From NCBI GenBank assembly GCA_020536535.1, contig JAHLWZ010000625.1:20201-84200 (forward strand): a stretch of DNA of 64,000 nucleotides, given 5' to 3'. Shown piece after piece: positions 1-10,137 of this stretch; within the stretch, counting starts at the first letter, position 1; each line of letters begins with the position of its first letter. The stretch is from Pelomyxa schiedti. Taxonomy: Eukaryota > Protista > Evosea. The notes below the pieces were generated by a model. That model was not told where the DNA came from. It did not search any database and was given only the letters and a program-made list of their open reading frames with translations. A program made the position numbers and the translations under genes.

Positions 1-2652
1 CAAGGGCAGAGAGAGTGCCTACATGCCTATCCTATAATATGACACAGCAACCTCCACACATCCATCTCTGACATGCCGTGAAACCTAGCAAAACGAGTTT
101 TTACCACTCACATGACGAGAAGCCGCTTTTCCCCTATCAGTTGTCCCCTGAGTGCTACTTCTTCCAGAGAAGATCTCTTTACCGAAATGTGGTGGATTTC
201 CCAGAGAAGGAATTCAATTGCCCTTTGCTCATAGCAATTCTGCTCAGAGGTGGAAACGTTAACAGCACTATTGGCAGGTCTCTCGATTTGATAAAGACGA
301 AAAGCATGAGCCAGGCTATTGGGAATCTTAATGTGACTTATATTTGGAGGCAAGACAGTTTCTGTATGGCAATTGAACAAGATGGGTTTCGCACAGATAT
401 CTAAGGGAGACTTATAAGTCTTCACATCGATGAACAAAGCAAACCTGTGCAAGTCGAATACCAGACTTCCAAAATGAGAAAATGCAGTGGATGTAGTATT
501 GGATTCCACGTGTTTTAGTTCACACTTGCCTTTGCTACTACAGTCCAGCATATAGTCAACGCGGGATATGCATAGTTCGATTTCCTGTGGTTTTTTTGAA
601 GTAAGGGAATACTCTGTAATAAACAGTGAAGCACCTGAGAGCTCGGGTGCCCATTGATGTAACTGTGAATAGATAAAAGTCGTTGAATCAAGGAATCATC
701 GTGACATCTGTAATTGTTTTAAAAGCCAGGCTCAATTCTTCAACACTCACTTCTGAAGCACTCCTGTAATAAATGAAGGAACTGCACAAATAGAGTGAAA
801 CAGTCTGTTGAATATCATTGCAAGACTTTGGGCTTTTTCGAACATTTTCCTTGGCCATGGGAAGGGTGACAAAGAGTAAGGTGCACTGTGAATCCCTACT
901 TTGATGTCCCTTGATTTGCCCATCATAAACAGGCCATGAGTCACCGACCAGGAAGATGCTGTCAGTACAGAAGTACTGAAGAATGGGTGCGAACCAAAAC
1001 TTGCATCAAGGGAGACGGTAACATTACATAAAGCTGATGCAATTTGTGCTGTGTGACGATACTTTGATAACGCACTTTCAGAGGTTTCCCCAATGCAACA
1101 TACTTGGATACTCAAGTGCTCCCGCTGTGGGCATAACAGAACCACTCCAGTTCCATTCGTTTCCGAGGAAAGTGACAGATTTTGTGCCTTCATTGCGAAA
1201 ATGAAATCACCAATAGGAAACCGTTGAGGAATCTTTACAGTGGCCAGCAGGCACCACCGCGCATTACATGTGCCCCCAACAACGCAGTTGATCTGTCCAA
1301 GTGAAGTATACACGTATTCACATCCACAAAGCACTCAGGATAAAGGGTGCCTGCAAAAATCACCAGTCAACCCACAGCACAATCTTATCCCAATCACATA
1401 GAGTTCTTTCCTCATAAAGAAGCAATAGCGACAAATGTTCAAGTCTTTCGGAAGTATAGGTTCCAAGAGTGATGAATAATGATATAACATTGAATGCCAT
1501 TTCTTGTATTTTCGAAGAGAGACAAAAGAGATTTGTTATGATCGTTTTTCAGATGATCCTTGGTCAAAAAGGAGCACGTCCTCTCAACAGTGCTGCTTAG
1601 ATTGTTTTTGTTTTGAATGAAAGTCTTCACTCCAGGAACTTTACCTTGGAGAAGGAAGATTCCGATGCAGTCCGCCACTGGATTCATTTTATACTCGTCA
1701 GGTAAGTCTGAGAATAGCCATTGCTTTCCTTTGTATTTAGCAAGTATGCACCTCCCCACAGACTTGATGTGCGACACTTTCAGACTATGGGAAGAAAGGT
1801 AGGGTGGCACAGGGTGGGTTGGCATCAAATAAGTCCAGCACTCTGAAAACGGTCGTCTGATTTCAGAAGCTTCAGGGTGGAGTTGAATGTATCGGTGTAG
1901 AAGCTGACACATTTGAAATGTGTCTATTTGACAACTAAATCCGCAATCTATCTTCAGGCATGTCTAAGGAAAATATGTGTGTTGTTATTTTATTTTATAT
2001 TTCAGAAGAGTTGCAACTGTTCAAAGCTCTGTCAAGCGGAGCAGACTTGGGAATTTCTTCCTCAAAAATTGTTTTCAACCTTCAAGTTATTTATTTCTTG
2101 TCTATGAAGTATAAAGGAGAATTACTTTGCTATCTCCAGTGTACAGAGCGTGTTCAATCGGCATTACACTGTTGGAGTCAATGACAGTGTAATTCACAAG
2201 AAGGATCGTATCACCTGTAAACGTGTAAAAAATCGCCAAAAATGAGCTGCCCTACAACCTTTCGCATGGCTGTTTTGACTTCCTCAACGTACTCGTTGTT
2301 CATTATCCCCCCTGAAATCACCAACACAGCGCACTGAGGTTGTTGGGTTGCTCCGTCACAGAGTCCAAGGTGAAAAGTTGAGCCACAGCCACCCGGTTCT
2401 CCATTGGATATCCTTCACCCATAGAGCTTCGCAACTTCTTCTCTTGGAATACGGTACAAAAGTGGAAAGAAGTTCTTTGTTTGGTGCTTGTTGGAACTGT
2501 ATCTACGTTGGTCCCATATATGCAACATTTACAGTGATGTTAGAAACTGATTTCCTGGGTATCTTTTCTCCTTGCCTTGTGCCAAGAACCTCAATCAAGG
2601 TCGCGAGTTGGTGGTACACTTTTGCATATCAGTGCCACCAAAGATACCCCAT
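1..2652 (-). CDS. GSS: Eukaryotic-type glutathione synthetase with a long N-terminal extension (probably Pgm1/IQCH-like); multi-exon, 3' end runs off the window, 5' end approximate
   Basis: Spliced translation gives GSS motifs in order: SWSVTHGL..APYSLSPFPWPRKMFEKA...IFNRLF; LCISRVDYMLD; ELKHVESNTTSTAF; EQNCYEQRAIEFLL; DGCVEVAVSYYRIG. ORF 747-1334 links the GSS N-terminus in frame to upstream non-GSS sequence. Confidence 0.8.
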
Positions 2653-2942: not shown

Positions 2943-5016
2943 ATGGCAACGACACCAACCAAGGCGGGGCGCGCCCTCATTACTGGACCGGTGGGAGTGG
3001 GAAAAACTACTCTCATCGAATCGTAGGCTTTTTCGTCATTTAAGAAAAATGAGTATATATTTTTCCCTGTTTCTCTTACTCGTTTTCAGGTACTGCAGTG
3101 GGTGCTGGCGAGAATATTCATACGAGGGATCACTAGAGCCCTGTGTGTGTATTTAACCTAATTTGTTTCCGCTTCCCCTTTTTCCCTTAACGAAACCAAA
3201 AAGTGGAGGAAACAAGTTACGGTTGGGAGTACTGCAGTGATATTGGATTTGGAGGAGAGGTTATTGCTCCACCAAGTTTATATCTTGCTCTCTAAACACA
3301 ACTAAAGTTATGGACAAGAGGAGTTCTCAGCAATGCGAGAGATGCTGTATGTTTGCTTGGTCTGGTTCTTTTGTTGAGAACCTCATCTTTGTGATTTAGT
3401 TTCAGAAGAGCAAATGTTATTTTGATTTGTTTCTCCGTTGCGGACAGGGATTCTTTTGTTGAGGCAATAGATACTTTTTATCCAATGGTAGATAGAATTT
3501 TGGAAGAACAGGTTTCCCTTTGTTTCCTGTAGTTGTTTTCACCCTCACATCTCTCAAGAGGCTGCTTTTTCTTGTTGGCTTAAAGTTAGACCTTGTTGGC
3601 ACATCAGGTGCTTGGTTTTGTTTTCCGTAGTTTTGTTTCCTTAGTCAGTTGTTACTGAAGGCCCTTTTGTTACATTTCAGGAAGGGATTTCAGCAGCCAT
3701 TAAAATTCAGGCCTATGGTTATTTTCAATGCAGGTTGAATTCAACATTGTTGGGATCTTCTGATGGATAGCTAGTTCAAAGAAGTATATTGGCTTGAATC
3801 ACCTGTTCGACGAAGTGGCAAAGGCTGGTCTGTTCTCTACTGAGTCAGATACAAAAGTCTCAAAGAAATCTGGATTTTTTGGGTTCTTCTCAAGAAAATC
3901 CAGCAATGTACCCAAAGTAAACCGTGGTATTGTCTTCCCTATTTCCGGGTATGTATTCTCCGTAAAACAGCAACGTTAACACTTTATATAGTAAAATTAA
4001 AACCCAAAGATCCTTGGCTATTCTTCCAAAAGAAGTCTGGTTGTGTACGGAATACTTGCTGGTAAAATAGGCATAACAACTATTATTAGATATCCTGGAA
4101 TACCTTGACTTTATTTCACTCATCCGATTATCTCGTACCTGTAAGCAACTCTATCACCTCGCAAAAACAGAGCCAATATGGTCAAATGCATCCGCCAGGC
4201 CATGGAGTTACCCAGGTCTCATCAAAGAGCAGAGTTGGAACAACACAAAATTTTCCTGGAACCCTGCCATGTGCTTTCCTGATTATGTTCCTCCCTCACC
4301 AAGGAGAGTGAGTATCCTGTCCTCACCTTTTCTTCTTTCCTAAAACGTACAAAAGTCGAGTTCTCCTGTTTGCTTTGGCCCAAATTCCACAATCAAGATG
4401 TCCAATGGCAAAGAGTGCCGAATGAAAGATATTGCTGTTGGGGATCAAGTTGAGTACCACCTCATTGGAAATGAAATGAATTTGTACAAGTCATTCGGCA
4501 CTATTCGTTGCATTTGGAAGTATGACTTTTCACTGTACGTCTAAATTCCTAACGCAATTGTACAGATGTTCAATGCCAAAACCAACAAAAATGGTTGTTA
4601 CAAAAAAGAAAACCCCAGAAGGAACAGAATCCATTCTCGAAATCACCCTTGATCACCCAGTGCTTCAAGATTCCCTGACCAACAAATGGTGCATGCCGGC
4701 ATCTATTCTCGGCGATCCTCACTTTTTCGACATTGACTGTGTTTACAACCTAGTTGTGGATTCAGCTCCATCACCACTACAAACTCAAAGTCAACAACAA
4801 GAATCCCGGGAACCTGAACAGCCACACACAGAAGTGGTTCAAAGTCAGCCAGAGCCGCAGAGAGGAGGGGTTGTTGTTGGAGGACATGTGTGTTGCACCC
4901 TTGGAATGAATGTTCCAGGTCTGGAGGATTCATTCTGGGGAACTGAATGTGTTGTTAAGTGGCTTGAGAAGAGGCCAGACTTCCCAAATGTACACACATA
5001 TTGTGCTGGGGACTGA
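2943..5016 (+). CDS. Atypical Rho/Rac-like small GTPase - F-box - Hint (Vint-type) fusion protein
   Basis: GT-AG spliced reading frame from ATG 2943: P-loop GPVGVGKT; WRKQVTVGSTAVILDLEESYGQEEFSAMRE; ILICFSV; LVGLKLDL; YFQCSS...LFDEVAKA. Then F-box LAILPKEVWLYILEYLDFISLIRLSRTCKQLYHLA..EPIW. Then Hint CFGPNSTIKMSNGKECRMKDIAVGDQV (Cys codon 4371), ITLDHPV, VYNLVVD, GHVCCTLG..FWGT..V..WL. Stop at 5014-5016. Confidence 0.85.
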
Positions 5017-5100: not shown

Positions 5101-6342
5101 TTATGAACTGCAGACAGAGTCTGTAACAGAAACGAGGTAGGCCGTTGGGAGTGGTTCTGTGCGGGTGTCATTCCATAGACGGGCTCTCAGAATGAGGGAA
5201 CCGGTGGGGGCATCCAGTAACCAAACTTCCAACTGGTTGTCTGCATTTTGTTGTGCTTCCAGAATGAAGGAACCCTGGATTGAGTGGCCACCACCTATTT
5301 CCTGCACAAAGCAGGGGGATTCCAGGCTGTTGGCATTGTACACCTCAAGTGGATTATCGCCAAAGAATTCGCTGGTAGCGGTAATTGCAAAGTGTGAGTT
5401 ATCCATAGCGTAGTAATGATACCCCTGCAGTGGGATTGTTTGGGAAACAACCCGAGACGAAAAGGGAGACGAGAATCTCAGCACGCCAGAATCGGGCACA
5501 GGTAATAGCACGCGGTCTTCAATTGCAGGAATTCCAGGAGAGAGCACAAGCACTGATCTGGCAGTGAATGCACCTATATCTAATTGGGTTCTGTTTGTAT
5601 AAACCAGTGCGCATCCCTCACGTTGTTCTCGCAAGTCAGCAATTACAATTTCAGTCAAACATCCACCAGTCAGTGGATAGCCCATAAGAATGAGGTGGTT
5701 GGAGTCATAAATGAACCTTAACCAAAAGAATGACAGCACACCAGTGGGTTTCAGAATCTTCATGTGAGGCTCCACCACGCCCCACTCTTGTTCCTTGTTC
5801 ACTTTCCAAAGGTGAATGTCACCGCTTGGCTGCGTAGATATTGCAACCCACTTGGAACTGAAGTCAAAGCAACTGCATTTCTCATCACCACAGAGTAAGG
5901 TCCTTCTCGGAATCCCAGGGGTGTTTACATTCCTTAAACTTGGAATAGCAGAATATCCACCCCCATGCAGGATTTGAACACCGCAATTGATCCAACCCGC
6001 GATGCTATTATAGTCTTCTCCCGTTGATATGTATTTCCACCCAGTGACCCCCAATGTCAGAGACACGCCGAATGCAACATATTGCCATCCCGGACTGGCT
6101 CGTGACAATGCGACGGTAACCACAGTGCTGGTCGGAACCACCCAATTCCTGCCAATGGATTCGATCAAGTCGCGGGACAGGCAAGCGGCGCTGCTGCGCC
6201 AACCGCGATTACGCAGAGCGCAGCACGCAAAGGCAATGAATTGTGGGTGGGAGAACAGTACGTGGCCCTCAACCAACGAGTAGTGGTGCACGTAGTGGCC
6301 CTCGAAATTCCCCATTCCTCCTTTCGTGGCCCCTTGCCCCAT
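5101..6342 (-). CDS. Intronless lineage-specific family protein (N-terminal QFIAF...S..L motif, beta-rich C-terminus); possible N-myristoylation (MGQGAT)
   Basis: Long uninterrupted ORF; shares its N-terminal motif and a GVSLTLGV-type motif with the neighbour at 6399. Confidence 0.7.
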   Translation of the reverse strand: MGQGATKGGMGNFEGHYVHHYSLVEGHVLFSHPQFIAFACCALRNRGWRSSAACLSRDLIESIGRNWVVPTSTVVTVALSRASPGWQYVAFGVSLTLGVTGWKYISTGEDYNSIAGWINCGVQILHGGGYSAIPSLRNVNTPGIPRRTLLCGDEKCSCFDFSSKWVAISTQPSGDIHLWKVNKEQEWGVVEPHMKILKPTGVLSFFWLRFIYDSNHLILMGYPLTGGCLTEIVIADLREQREGCALVYTNRTQLDIGAFTARSVLVLSPGIPAIEDRVLLPVPDSGVLRFSSPFSSRVVSQTIPLQGYHYYAMDNSHFAITATSEFFGDNPLEVYNANSLESPCFVQEIGGGHSIQGSFILEAQQNADNQLEVWLLDAPTGSLILRARLWNDTRTEPLPTAYLVSVTDSVCSS

Positions 6343-6398
6343 CTCCTTGAAACGGTTTATGTTCAGGGAAATCTCGAAAAAGGATTTTGATTGATGTG

Positions 6399-7703
6399 AT
6401 GGCGACAATCACCAGTAGGGGTGGGACTGTGAGGATTGTTCTTAATGCACGTGAGCAGTTTGTTGCGTTTGCTCTTTCTTCTCATGTCAGGTGCGGGAGT
6501 GAAAGCCCTGCGCGGGTCATTTTTGCCTACGGCGGACCGCTTCTGCTTAGGTACATGTGGCGTCTCATGTCTGGTTTCAGGCAAACTAGCACTCACCGTT
6601 CAGAGGTAGGCTCATCGGATTTGGGCTCTGGGGAGACTGGCTTTGATTGCTGGAGAGATGGGAGGTGGTGGATAAAGTTCAAGTGCAGAACTGTTGCTCG
6701 GGCATACGAGGCGTGGGCTTGGCGTTGGTGCACGGCCTGGGTGTCACCTTTGTTGTTGGGTGTCATTGGTGATGTTGTGGTGGAGAGGGTGGAAGAGAAT
6801 ACGCAGGGTTTTACGAGATATGGAACAGGTGGGTGGGTTGACCCTGCGCATTTAGTTGGGGTAAGGTTGGAGCCTGATGGGGTGTTTAGTTATCTCAGGA
6901 ATTGTGTCACCGGCGAGCAAAAGCGCCTGTTCAAATGTGGGGATGACACTCTGGCTCAGGAGGTTGCCGGTGGGAAGTGGCTGGTCTGGTGGGGCTCTGA
7001 TGGTGATTCTGACAAATTGGTTATTGTTGACCTGTGGGATCCACGGCCGGAGGAAACCCGCGTAGATTTTCACATCGCTCCAAGAGGGGATGGGAGTCAT
7101 ATGGAAGATAATGCGGCGCTTATAGCAAATAGGTGGGTGTTGGATCGTATAGTGATTTTGACTGTTCCGGAACGGAATGTGCTGGAATTGAGAGAAATTG
7201 ACTTGCCGCTCACACGGGCAACGAATTATATTGTTACAACAGGTATGACAAGGTGTGGGCCAATACAGGAGATGAAGAGTGTGTCAAAAGTGCTATTTTT
7301 CAAGAACTCCTGGGGAATGGAAGCAAATTCATTCATTGGTTTGATTACAACTGATAATGAGGCACAAAGAAGTACTGTAATAAAAATTGATTCCACTGGG
7401 CAGATAGAAAATCTGGAAGTTGGAAAGCGGCTCTCTTTGAGTCAGCTCAACAAATCCCTGTTCGGGGTTGTCAAGAGCAACCTAAAGCATCAAAGGATAC
7501 AGTTCGAAATCTGGGATACAAACAACACAAAAGGTCCGTGGAGAGTGATTCAACTGAATGACCACCAGAGCCTGACCACAGGTGCTGATGGGTTTATTTA
7601 TCAGATTGATTCTAACCCCCAGTGGCAACACCGTATTAGTGTTATCGAGGCAAGTTCCGGTGTTGTTGTTTTTACCATAGAGCACCACTTTTTGTCGTTG
7701 TAA
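6399..7703 (+). CDS. Intronless lineage-specific family protein, paralog-like to 5101-6342
   Basis: 434-codon ORF with AREQFVAFALSSHVRCGSESPAR and WVSPLLLGV motifs and a beta-strand-rich C-terminal region. Confidence 0.75.
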   Translation: MATITSRGGTVRIVLNAREQFVAFALSSHVRCGSESPARVIFAYGGPLLLRYMWRLMSGFRQTSTHRSEVGSSDLGSGETGFDCWRDGRWWIKFKCRTVARAYEAWAWRWCTAWVSPLLLGVIGDVVVERVEENTQGFTRYGTGGWVDPAHLVGVRLEPDGVFSYLRNCVTGEQKRLFKCGDDTLAQEVAGGKWLVWWGSDGDSDKLVIVDLWDPRPEETRVDFHIAPRGDGSHMEDNAALIANRWVLDRIVILTVPERNVLELREIDLPLTRATNYIVTTGMTRCGPIQEMKSVSKVLFFKNSWGMEANSFIGLITTDNEAQRSTVIKIDSTGQIENLEVGKRLSLSQLNKSLFGVVKSNLKHQRIQFEIWDTNNTKGPWRVIQLNDHQSLTTGADGFIYQIDSNPQWQHRISVIEASSGVVVFTIEHHFLSL

Positions 7704-7987
7704 TTTACAGACAAGCAAAAAGAAAGCTATTTTATTTGGGTCCATGATGCTCTCAAGAATCGTTAGTATCAACCAAAGTTGGGTTCCTCTGGAGCATGGA
7801 ATTGTGGGCAGGATGGGGAACCGACCCAGCTCAATCATCATCAGAGAAAGACAGTGGCAGTGGCACAAAAAAATTTCTTTCAGAGGTGCTTGTGTATGAT
7901 GGTCAGACAGGTGCCGCGCCGCTCATGAAAAACCCGTTGAAACTGTTTTCTGTGTTTCCGGACATGAAATATCTCCAATAATAATAA

Positions 7988-10137
7988 ATGGACAGAAGGA
8001 GGCTCGACGCCGACCGCGTGTTGTGTATATCGCGAATTGTGTGGGAGTGCACCCTTAAGTGTCGCCACCTCCCACATCGAACAACTGACGAAGAAGTCTT
8101 CGACTCTGCCGTATCGCTAATGGCAGTGGCTGAAGCTCTGTTTCCCCTCGTGGCACTGGCCTGCAAGAAAGTATCCTCAGAGAATCCCTCTCAAAGCACA
8201 TACTTTTCACTCGAGTGCGCCGGCGCGGCCGGCAGCCGAGCGTGCGTGACGTGGATTCTATCCCATAAGCCCCACAGAGCCATCAACAAGGAATGCCTTG
8301 CGGTGCTGTGGGGACTGTGCGGCGGCGGCCATTTGGAGCTCGCTATGAAACTGGCCGGCTCCCGGCGCGGTTCCAATCTTCCACCCGTTTCTATTGGCGG
8401 TGAGACCGGGACTGAGAATGTAGATAATGGGAGCAATAGGAGTGAGACTGAGGGGTGGGCTGGATTGAAGTGGTGCGGGGATGATGATGATGAATTTGTC
8501 CAGGAAGTGAGGAGTATAGGGAACCTGAACAAATTCGGTTTTTGTTCACTTCTACACAATGTGTGCGGAAATGGGCACCTTGACGTGGCCAAGTGGGTGG
8601 TTTCTAGGTTTGGAATGAAGGAGCCTTGGGAATTTGCTGATTCACTTGCGAGAGCTTTGCATATGGGACAACTTGAAGTGGCACAGTGGCTGATTGACAC
8701 GGTTCCCTTGAAGGACCTTCAGAACTCCAAGCATGCTGACTTGCTGTGGTGTGCGTGTCACAGTGGGAAAGTAGAAGTTGCTGAATGGTTAGAAGCAAAC
8801 TTTCCCGACGCTGTAGAGGCCCGCAGTTCTTCCACAATTTGGTGGTTTACCAGACAGAAAAATATAACAAACACTAACCTTATCAAAATGAGCCAGTGGC
8901 TCGAAGACCGGTCAATTTCCAAAGCAGACCTACAGTCAATTTACAATGAGGAAGTCGTCAAATGGGCAGTTGACTTTTATGGAATCACTGTAGCAGAAAA
9001 TGATTTAATCCATTCAGTGGACTTGGGGAATTTATGCCTTACCAAGTGGTATGTTTTAGAGAAGAATGTCTCTCCAACACCAGCTGTGTTTATTGCAGCT
9101 TGTGGCAACTTTGTTGATGAAGTTCCTGTTGTTCGGTGGTTATCAACTAGGCTTTCTTTTCCACTAACACAACAATACCTTCGCCATGCTCTCTTCCAGT
9201 CACTGAGATCAGGAAACATCAGGATTGCAAATTGGTTGGAAGAAAATTTCCGCATTACGAGTCAGGATAATGATTTTATGACATCCCCAACGACAACTAT
9301 AGGAGAGCTATGCAAAGAAGCGGGGGCTGATGGAGCAGAGAAAGGTATCAAGTGGTTCCTCCAGCACAGCACAAAGGGGATTTTATGGTGTGAAGAGGAG
9401 GCGGCTCGAATTCTCGAAATCTCCCTTAGGAAAAATGAGGCACCAGTGCAACTACTTCTGCTTGACACCTTTGGCCCAGCAGTTTTTCCGTACAACAAAC
9501 ACCGGGACCTCATGAAAAGGATACTGAGAGAAACAGTTTTCTGTGGACTTCCAAAAATACAGAGCCTGATTTCCACTGTTGGACCAGACTTCTTCACCAA
9601 AGCCGAAGTGGCAGAGTCCCTCACAAATGATAACAGAGAAATTTCCAGTAAATCTGCCAAGTGGCTTATAACTCAGTTTGGACTTGCTAAAGAGCATGTT
9701 ACACGAAATAACCACATTTTATTGTGGAGCATGCTATCTCACCGGCACAACAAATGTGCGGAGTGGCTCATCCGGACATTTAATATCTGTCTCCGAGAGG
9801 TTTTGAGTCTCAACATCGAGATGCAAATTAATCCCAACAATAGATGCACTCCCCACCAGTAAACATCTTGTGGGGCAACGTTGTCTCCACGGACTTGGAG
9901 ACATGGAAAGTGCTACTGAGAGTATTCCCAACAGAACTGACCCCACAAATCGTCAAGAAACGCTTCTCGAAGTTCGTTATTGCATCTCCCATAACAGCTC
10001 AGTTCGTAATGCAGCATTTCCCCGGTGCCATCACAACCGAGGAAATCAGCCAAGCATCCTCCTCTTGCCCCTTCCATTTTGTCACTCTGGAGACCTGTTG
10101 CTGGGTGAATTCCCTTCGTTCTTCCCCTGGTTCTTGA
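7988..10137 (+). CDS. Ankyrin-like helical repeat protein of an expanded family
   Basis: Degenerate ankyrin-like units (LCGGGHLELA, VCGNGHLDVAKWV, ACHSGKVEVAEWL, LRSGNIRIANWL). ORFs 7988-9862 and 9844-10137 can be joined by a 44-nt GT-AG intron ending at 9843. Confidence 0.75.

Follow-up and report, generated by a model that had tools for sequence, protein, structure and literature searches.

The window, a 64,000-nucleotide stretch of a Pelomyxa schiedti contig (JAHLWZ010000625.1), contains a gene, Pelo_7900, whose single spliced reading frame joins a small GTPase domain, an F-box and a C-terminal Hint domain of the Vint type. Its profile score and fold mark the protein as a Vint and its motif as an F-box protein, and it belongs to the Ras superfamily, with switch regions that are not those of Rho. 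It is part of a family under purifying selection whose Vint domains keep the residues of an N-S acyl shift, and the precursor may mature by cutting itself immediately before the Vint to leave a GTPase-F-box adaptor.

Three-frame reading places the gene in 12 exons separated by 11 GT-AG introns of 41-67 nt each, with a single open frame of 511 amino acids from the ATG at 2943 to the TGA at 5016 on the + strand (Table 1). The public annotation of the 84,200-bp contig (Pelo_7900, labeled P0077) gives a protein of 507 amino acids that is otherwise identical, the acceptor of intron 6 lying further downstream in-frame and shortening the product by four residues. Eight of the 11 intron positions match most annotated paralogs in place and phase, with the remainder located in variable loops. 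The splice joints 4307>4356 and 4519>4566, both GT-AG, are present in RNA contigs from three single-cell RNA runs of one sample in one study, which places the F-box exon together with the two Vint exons on one spliced transcript. No RNA contig over the GTPase exons (2943-4088) is found among the four runs compared, and the join between GTPase and F-box is read from the open frame, the annotation and the conserved introns. The proposal of one spliced frame, made in a sequence-only reading of this DNA, is thus upheld by the 12-exon model, the annotation and the F-box-Vint joints, while the RNA check of splicing that it called for succeeds for both F-box-to-Vint joints and does not reach the GTPase exons. 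That gap would accommodate a model in which a GTPase gene and an F-box-Vint gene have been wrongly joined, but this is extremely improbable as the frame is open across all introns, the public annotation gives the same model and the order and intron positions recur at 14 further loci and in another organism. The interval 2943-5016 is confirmed as one real gene, with its F-box-Vint part expressed and spliced.

Two further features of the transcripts were observed. One RNA run has an alternative 58-nt intron (4141-4198; joint 4140>4199) that changes the frame and leads to a stop at 4423, ahead of most of the Vint; the product would have 310 amino acids, be cut within the F-box and have no Vint. 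Two alleles are expressed over 4192-4841 with 12 differing sites (10 codons, of which seven are replacement and three silent, and one intronic site), none of the codons being catalytic; at three positions in the linker the residue of the other allele is of the type found in paralogs.

Table 1. Features of Pelo_7900 and its neighbors, in window positions.
Feature	Position	Strand	Basis
Glutathione synthetase exon	747-1334	-	Upstream neighbor
Pelo_7900, whole gene	2943..5016	+	Three-frame model, public annotation, shared introns
Exons 1-6	2943-3022, 3090-3144, 3204-3259, 3308-3346, 3400-3511, 3559-3607	+	Model and annotation
Exons 7-12	3649 (or 3661)-3733, 3775-3948, 3992-4044, 4090-4307, 4356-4519, 4566-5016	+	Model and annotation
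Small GTPase domain, exons 1-8	2964..3829	+	Pfam Ras, PDB halves, alignments
G1	2985-3008	+	Within small GTPase domain
Switch I	3121-3141	+	Within small GTPase domain
G3, split by intron 3	3249-3317	+	Within small GTPase domain
G4	3574-3591	+	Within small GTPase domain
G5	3729-3781	+	Within small GTPase domain
Basic-aromatic stretch KKSGFFGFFSRK	3863..3898	+	Conserved; position of Ras/Rho hypervariable region
F-box, split by intron 9 (4045-4089)	4014..4181	+	Pfam F-box; best PDB matches Fbw7, Skp2
Aromatic linker, ~45 aa, with Val(-1) last; interrupted by intron 4308-4355 (RNA-confirmed)	4182..4370	+	Conserved in family
Vint-type Hint domain with Vint tail; intron 4520-4565 RNA-confirmed	4371..5013	+	Pfam Vint; paralog model compared with 8R2C
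Cys1 nucleophile (C309 in P0077), in V|CFG	4371..4373	+	Invariant in 10-row family alignment
Block B ITLDHP (T385, H388)	4642..4659	+	Motif alignment
Block F VYNL, Asn at F4 position (N419)	4741..4752	+	Motif alignment
VCCTLGM; Thr469 at place of intein terminal Asn / Hedgehog C400 (C143); Leu at +1	4888..4908	+	Structural alignment
Short Vint tail VPG..D.FWG..V..WL..RPDFP, lacking the two His of vWA-Vint tails	4909..5013	+	Alignments
DSFWGT	4927-4944	+	Motif mapping
Intronless ORF, ~435 aa, no Pfam match	5101-6408	-	Neighbor
Intronless ORF, ~435 aa, no Pfam match	6387-7703	+	Neighbor
Ankyrin-repeat ORF	7988-9862	+	Neighbor

All three domains of P0077 score above the curated Pfam cut-offs, with Ras at 82.8 bits (cut-off 21.6; E 2.6e-23), F-box (PF00646) at 40.3 bits (cut-off 20.5; E 2.4e-10) and Vint (PF14623) at 34.9 bits (cut-off 27). 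The F-box is as good as had been claimed, Fbw7 and Skp2 being its best PDB matches, and docking to SKP1-CUL1 is predicted from the motif; SKP1 is encoded at five loci of the P. schiedti genome, in which F-box matches number at least 147. The basic-aromatic stretch that follows the G domain is a candidate membrane anchor. The full-length predicted model (pLDDT 54) is uninformative on the packing of the linker.

The Vint of a paralog, P0012, was modeled in place of that of Pelo_7900, using a 37-row alignment, and has a pLDDT of 88.6. The best match to this model is the Tetrahymena Vint crystal structure 8R2C (Foldseek E 4.4e-10), with a Z of 20.9 and an rmsd of 2.8 for 155 aligned residues over 7-171; BIL, Hedgehog and inteins come next, at Z of 11 or less (1AT0, Z 11.2). 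The tail of the P0012 model contains an aromatic-rich helix and corresponds to the Vint tail of 8R2C. Profile score and paralog model together bear out the Vint/Hint assignment, and the motifs read by eye (the Cys of V|CFG, ITLDHP, VYNL, VCCTLGM and DSFWGT) are all where they had been placed, with no terminal HN. The opposite strand repeatedly reads FGPK, which reflects nothing more than the near-palindromic nature of the FGPN codons.

Cys1, the block-B Thr-x-Asp-His-Pro and the block-F Asn are present in every family locus in which the motif was read, with the exception of C387b, where block A is not matched by the pattern and is missing from the annotation too. These catalytic residues are invariant despite an overall family identity of ~40%, and the loops adjoining them differ freely in length. 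Additional conserved cysteines occur in CIWKC, WC.P and CCTLG. The residue at -1 is almost always Val, a β-branched residue that slows such reactions. In place of the intein terminal His-Asn followed by Cys, Ser or Thr at +1 there is Cys-Thr and then Leu, and Hedgehog Asp-303 (D303) and Cys-400 (C400) align to Lys358, the Lys of CIWKC, and to Thr469, respectively. In Hedgehog, Cys1 and TxxH drive the N-S shift and thiol cleavage and D303 activates the sterol (PMC9163320); C143 (C400) forms a branched intermediate (PMC12054796). The alignments thus indicate that the N-S acyl-shift residues (C309, T385 and H388) are retained, as the sequence-only reading held, and that those for Asn cyclization, splicing and Hedgehog-type sterol activation are absent. 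N-terminal self-cleavage is likely because Cys1 and TxxH are kept, and splicing and cholesterol transfer are unlikely because the intein His-Asn, the +1 nucleophile and D303 are missing. The occurrence of Thr, Ser or Cys at the C143 position of Vints suggests, by analogy, a branched ester on this residue as a step.

The G domain is a mosaic of Ras-like switches and a Rho/Rac-like back half. For residues 8-82 the top 60 PDB matches are all Ras/Rap, and for residues 78-178 the top PDB matches are all Rho/Rac, the best being Entamoeba Rho (3REF). The two halves are 20% and 46% identical to the Rac-type gene of a second organism, L061, compared with 34% and 28% to a Ras. The Rho-type second half (LVGxKxDL, QEG, YxxCS) is present, whereas the Rho-type switch I/II (PTVFDNY, DTAGQEDY..LRPLSY) is replaced by the Ras-like YEGSLEP and GQEEFSAMREM, so that the Rho/Rac assignment originally given to the whole domain stands for its back half and fails for its front half. 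The positions of Ras G12, T35, D57 and Q61 are occupied by V17, S41, E63 and Q67, amounting to G12V-, T35S- and D57E-type changes with Q61 kept. Changes at G12, T35 and D57 in Ras impair hydrolysis and the Mg and effector contacts. Normal GTP/GDP cycling is doubtful on account of these Val, Ser and Glu residues, and the idea of the domain as a GTPase switch is correspondingly weakened. There is no CAAX box after the G domain or at the C terminus of Pelo_7900, and the C termini vary across the family.

Pelo_7900 is no isolated case: the family has ~19 loci in P. schiedti and a relative in the second organism. In the genome searched (52.4 Mb in 5,337 contigs), Pfam Vint matches occur at 47 places; family profile and local mapping give the order GTPase, F-box, Vint at 15 loci, and Kelch, F-box, Vint at four, in two of which an N-terminal Rac-like domain is confirmed. 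The counts take in loci regardless of intactness, and the presence of the GTPase was judged in the loci read, C386 and C930 being short of upstream sequence and C2773, C35 and C3322 being fragments or unread. One contig, C387, carries two GTPase-F-box-Vint loci in tandem. Values of dN/dS of ~0.1-0.4 across all domains (0.15-0.32 for the Vint) in paralog pairs, those with Pelo_7900 being partly saturated, show purifying selection on the family. In the tree, the family Vints form a clade apart from the vWA-Vints (support 100/99), which also takes in ankyrin-Vint, other Pelomyxa, cryptophyte, haptophyte and environmental proteins with other N termini. The closest proteins in the homolog search are annotated P. 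schiedti proteins, with no GTPase-F-box-Vint architecture outside P. schiedti among the homolog matches listed; the ten structure matches listed from the ESM Atlas include no F-box+Vint cluster, and there was no usable feature match.

Several other Vint loci of the genome are of note. The nearest paralog of Pelo_7900, C1195 (L033, G000:C1195:1-2231), has 76% DNA identity and is a probable pseudogene because of frameshifting 11- and 10-nt deletions. A second Vint subtype (CFLGDG...LTTGHPV...DHSV.INGL.VCTLGKDCG; L010-L013, L016, L017, L021, L024) is attached either to Kelch-F-box or to F-box, so that the coupling of Vint with an F-box exists in two subtypes. Eight canonical vWA-Vwaint-Vint genes (L001-L008) are also present. 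The Vint of an ankyrin-repeat protein, L054 (G000:C672, P0017), lies very near that of a GTPase-F-box-Vint paralog (support 100/96), a closeness that indicates recent domain shuffling.

The second organism, an environmental eukaryote, is represented by L061, a 109-kb contig of an environmental assembly that is also partly present in two other runs, has a GC content of 38.6% and gives no DNA match in the P. schiedti genome (G000). It carries a spliced gene that encodes a near-canonical Rac domain along with Kelch repeats, an F-box, the linker and a Vint; the catalytic residues are unchanged, and identity over the F-box-Vint part is 36-41%. Five G-domain introns and the F-box intron are in the same place and phase as in Pelo_7900, and this sharing of architecture and introns indicates that the architecture predates a single species. 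The simplest view is that Pelo_7900, Kelch-less and Ras-like, is the derived form, although the Vint tree leaves the order between Kelch and Kelch-less forms undecided. The L061 gene includes a GC-AG intron, and a tRNA-His gene (3251-3321 of L061) lies ~30 nt upstream of its start codon. More widely, a cryptophyte (Rhodomonas), Pavlovales and environmental sequences encode proteins with the same non-vWA Vint subtype and N-terminal regions without a Pfam match (P0022, P0028-P0030, P0032, P0033, P0011, P0019, P0023); the N termini of the cryptophyte and haptophyte proteins look F-box-like, which Pfam did not confirm.

That the Pelo_7900 Vint carries out some acyl-shift chemistry is probable, and there is an even chance that this takes the form of self-cleavage of the precursor at Val308|Cys309 to give a GTPase-F-box SCF adaptor in a one-way maturation. 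Cys309 would attack the Val308 carbonyl in a single-turnover N-S acyl shift assisted by T385 and H388, the acyl group may pass to Thr469, and water or a small thiol would free a 308-amino acid GTPase-F-box protein with the aromatic linker as its C terminus. Splicing and C-terminal cleavage would not occur because there is no His-Asn and +1 is Leu. The freed N-terminal part would dock on SKP1-CUL1, where the hydrolysis-impaired G domain (or, in sister genes, the Kelch propeller) may, together with the basic-aromatic stretch, provide membrane position and substrate contact in a manner like RhoBTB/Rab40, and removal of the Vint would serve the adaptor as an irreversible maturation step or a timer. 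Self-cleavage is favored by the invariance of the catalytic residues amid divergent sequence, which extends to L061, by the low dN/dS of the Vint, by a fold nearest to a Vint and then to BIL, Hedgehog and inteins, by the Thr at the intein-Asn/Hedgehog C400 position, by the part played by Cys1/TxxH in Hedgehog (PMC9163320) and by the SKP1 and F-box complement of the genome. Against it, no Vint activity was found published in the literature searched, Val at -1 is slow for such chemistry, the conserved tail and linker exceed the needs of plain hydrolysis, a cleaved Kelch-less adaptor would have no classical substrate receptor behind the F-box, and SKP1 and nucleotide binding are both predictions.

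In an alternative reading, the (thio)ester, possibly parked on Thr469, would be resolved by a protein amine or thiol, ligating the GTPase-F-box part to a target that is then tied covalently to the SCF. Behind the F-box, the usual place of a substrate receptor, there is only linker and Vint, and a slow Val(-1) could hold the ester in waiting; two separate Vint subtypes are joined to F-boxes in this genome, U-box-vWA-Vint proteins exist, and Tetrahymena BIL2 makes isopeptide links from ubl4 to substrates that include a Ras GTPase (PMC8616854). The adduct is hypothetical, though, a ligated adaptor could be used only once, and BIL2 still has the Asn of inteins and acts together with ubiquitin-like domains on either side, neither of which applies to the Pelo_7900 Vint, making such capture rather unlikely; if true, it would put Hint chemistry to a new use and give the Vint class its first function. 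The same receptor position, the Val at -1, the several extra conserved cysteines and the lack of a Vint activity in the literature searched could also describe an ordinary F-box protein that is not cleaved in vivo and retains the Vint as a substrate-binding or regulatory (for example, redox-sensing) domain. This is unlikely as exactly C1, T and H are invariant over 20 loci and two species while the loops beside them are free in length, as catalysis predicts. Transfer of the N-terminal part to a sterol or other lipid alcohol, put forward earlier as a replacement for prenylation, would fit with the missing CAAX box, the aromatic-rich helix of the Vint tail and the precedent of GmGIN1, a GTPase with a true Hog domain (PMC2362128). 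It is nevertheless very unlikely given Lys at the position of D303, the sterol activator in Hedgehog (PMC9163320), Thr at C400 and a tail of the kind common to Vints, as in 8R2C; the basic-aromatic stretch might already bind membranes and is the simpler anchor candidate. Self-cleavage with release of the adaptor remains the preferred reading.

Of the known systems, the Hedgehog and vWA-Vint precursors are nearest to Pelo_7900 in its predicted mode of action, but it falls outside both groups since it lacks vWA/Vwaint, D303 and C400. It shares with the vWA-Vint proteins the Hint subtype, motifs A and B, the C-terminal tail fold and a cytosolic location, and some of these, the U-box-vWA-Vint forms of the vWA-Vwaint-Vint proteins, also have an E3 module (Burglin 2008, PMC2362128). 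It differs in having no vWA/Vwaint Pfam match, a GTPase and F-box N-terminal part, a separate Vint clade, DHP in block B, a shorter tail, and TLGM and D-S-F-W-G replacing TLGH and the His of H-x-F/Y-G. The Hedgehog autoprocessing domain (Hint and SRR) is similar in fold, C1, TxxH, C-terminal position and, as proposed here, cleavage on the N-terminal side only, but Pelo_7900 has Val instead of Gly at -1 and is not secreted. GmGIN1 of Glomus mosseae likewise has a GTPase before a C-terminal Hint and no signal peptide; its Hog domain includes motifs J, K and L, its GTPase is AIG1/IAN-like and there is no F-box (PMC2362128). BUBL/BIL2 of Tetrahymena (PMC8616854) is another protist Hint tied to the ubiquitin system and a model for transfer to protein amines, although BIL2 lies between ubiquitin-like domains and has a terminal Asn, whereas the Pelo_7900 Hint is terminal and follows an F-box.

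Among GTPase-cullin adaptors, RhoBTB acts with CUL3 and Rab40, through a SOCS box, with CUL5. RhoBTB3 has been described in this role (PMC3812982). As in these proteins, an atypical small GTPase and a cullin-adaptor motif occur in one polypeptide, the differences being an F-box (CUL1) in place of BTB or SOCS and a self-processing domain in place of a prenylated or plain tail; the family thus adds an F-box form to such fusions. The literature searched (mostly outside subscription journals) yielded no paper on GTPase, F-box and Vint together, on structure 8R2C, on Pelomyxa with F-box and GTPase, or on Vint beyond PMC2362128, in keeping with the suggestion that the architecture is undescribed, with GmGIN1, U-box-vWA-Vint and BUBL/BIL2 as partial precedents. 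Vint, the third class of Hint domain in eukaryotes, was described in 2008 and has a structure on deposit (8R2C), but no activity is reported in the literature searched. The family sets it on small, soluble and well-understood partners, making its function directly testable. That F-boxes accompany two Vint subtypes in one genome hints that Hint chemistry and ubiquitin ligases are functionally linked, and conservation in L061 makes the architecture more than a quirk of one assembly.

The neighboring genes (747-1334 and 5101-9862) show no sign of belonging with Pelo_7900. A 44-bp near-identical, high-copy element lies at 2854-2897, 45 nt upstream of the ATG, and has 312 candidates in the genome, a depth of ~6,000 in the DNA run and often two inverted copies 50-150 nt apart; it resembles the terminus of a MITE-type element. 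In a DNA-run contig 49 other letters replace 2802-2901, indicating that the element is polymorphic at Pelo_7900.
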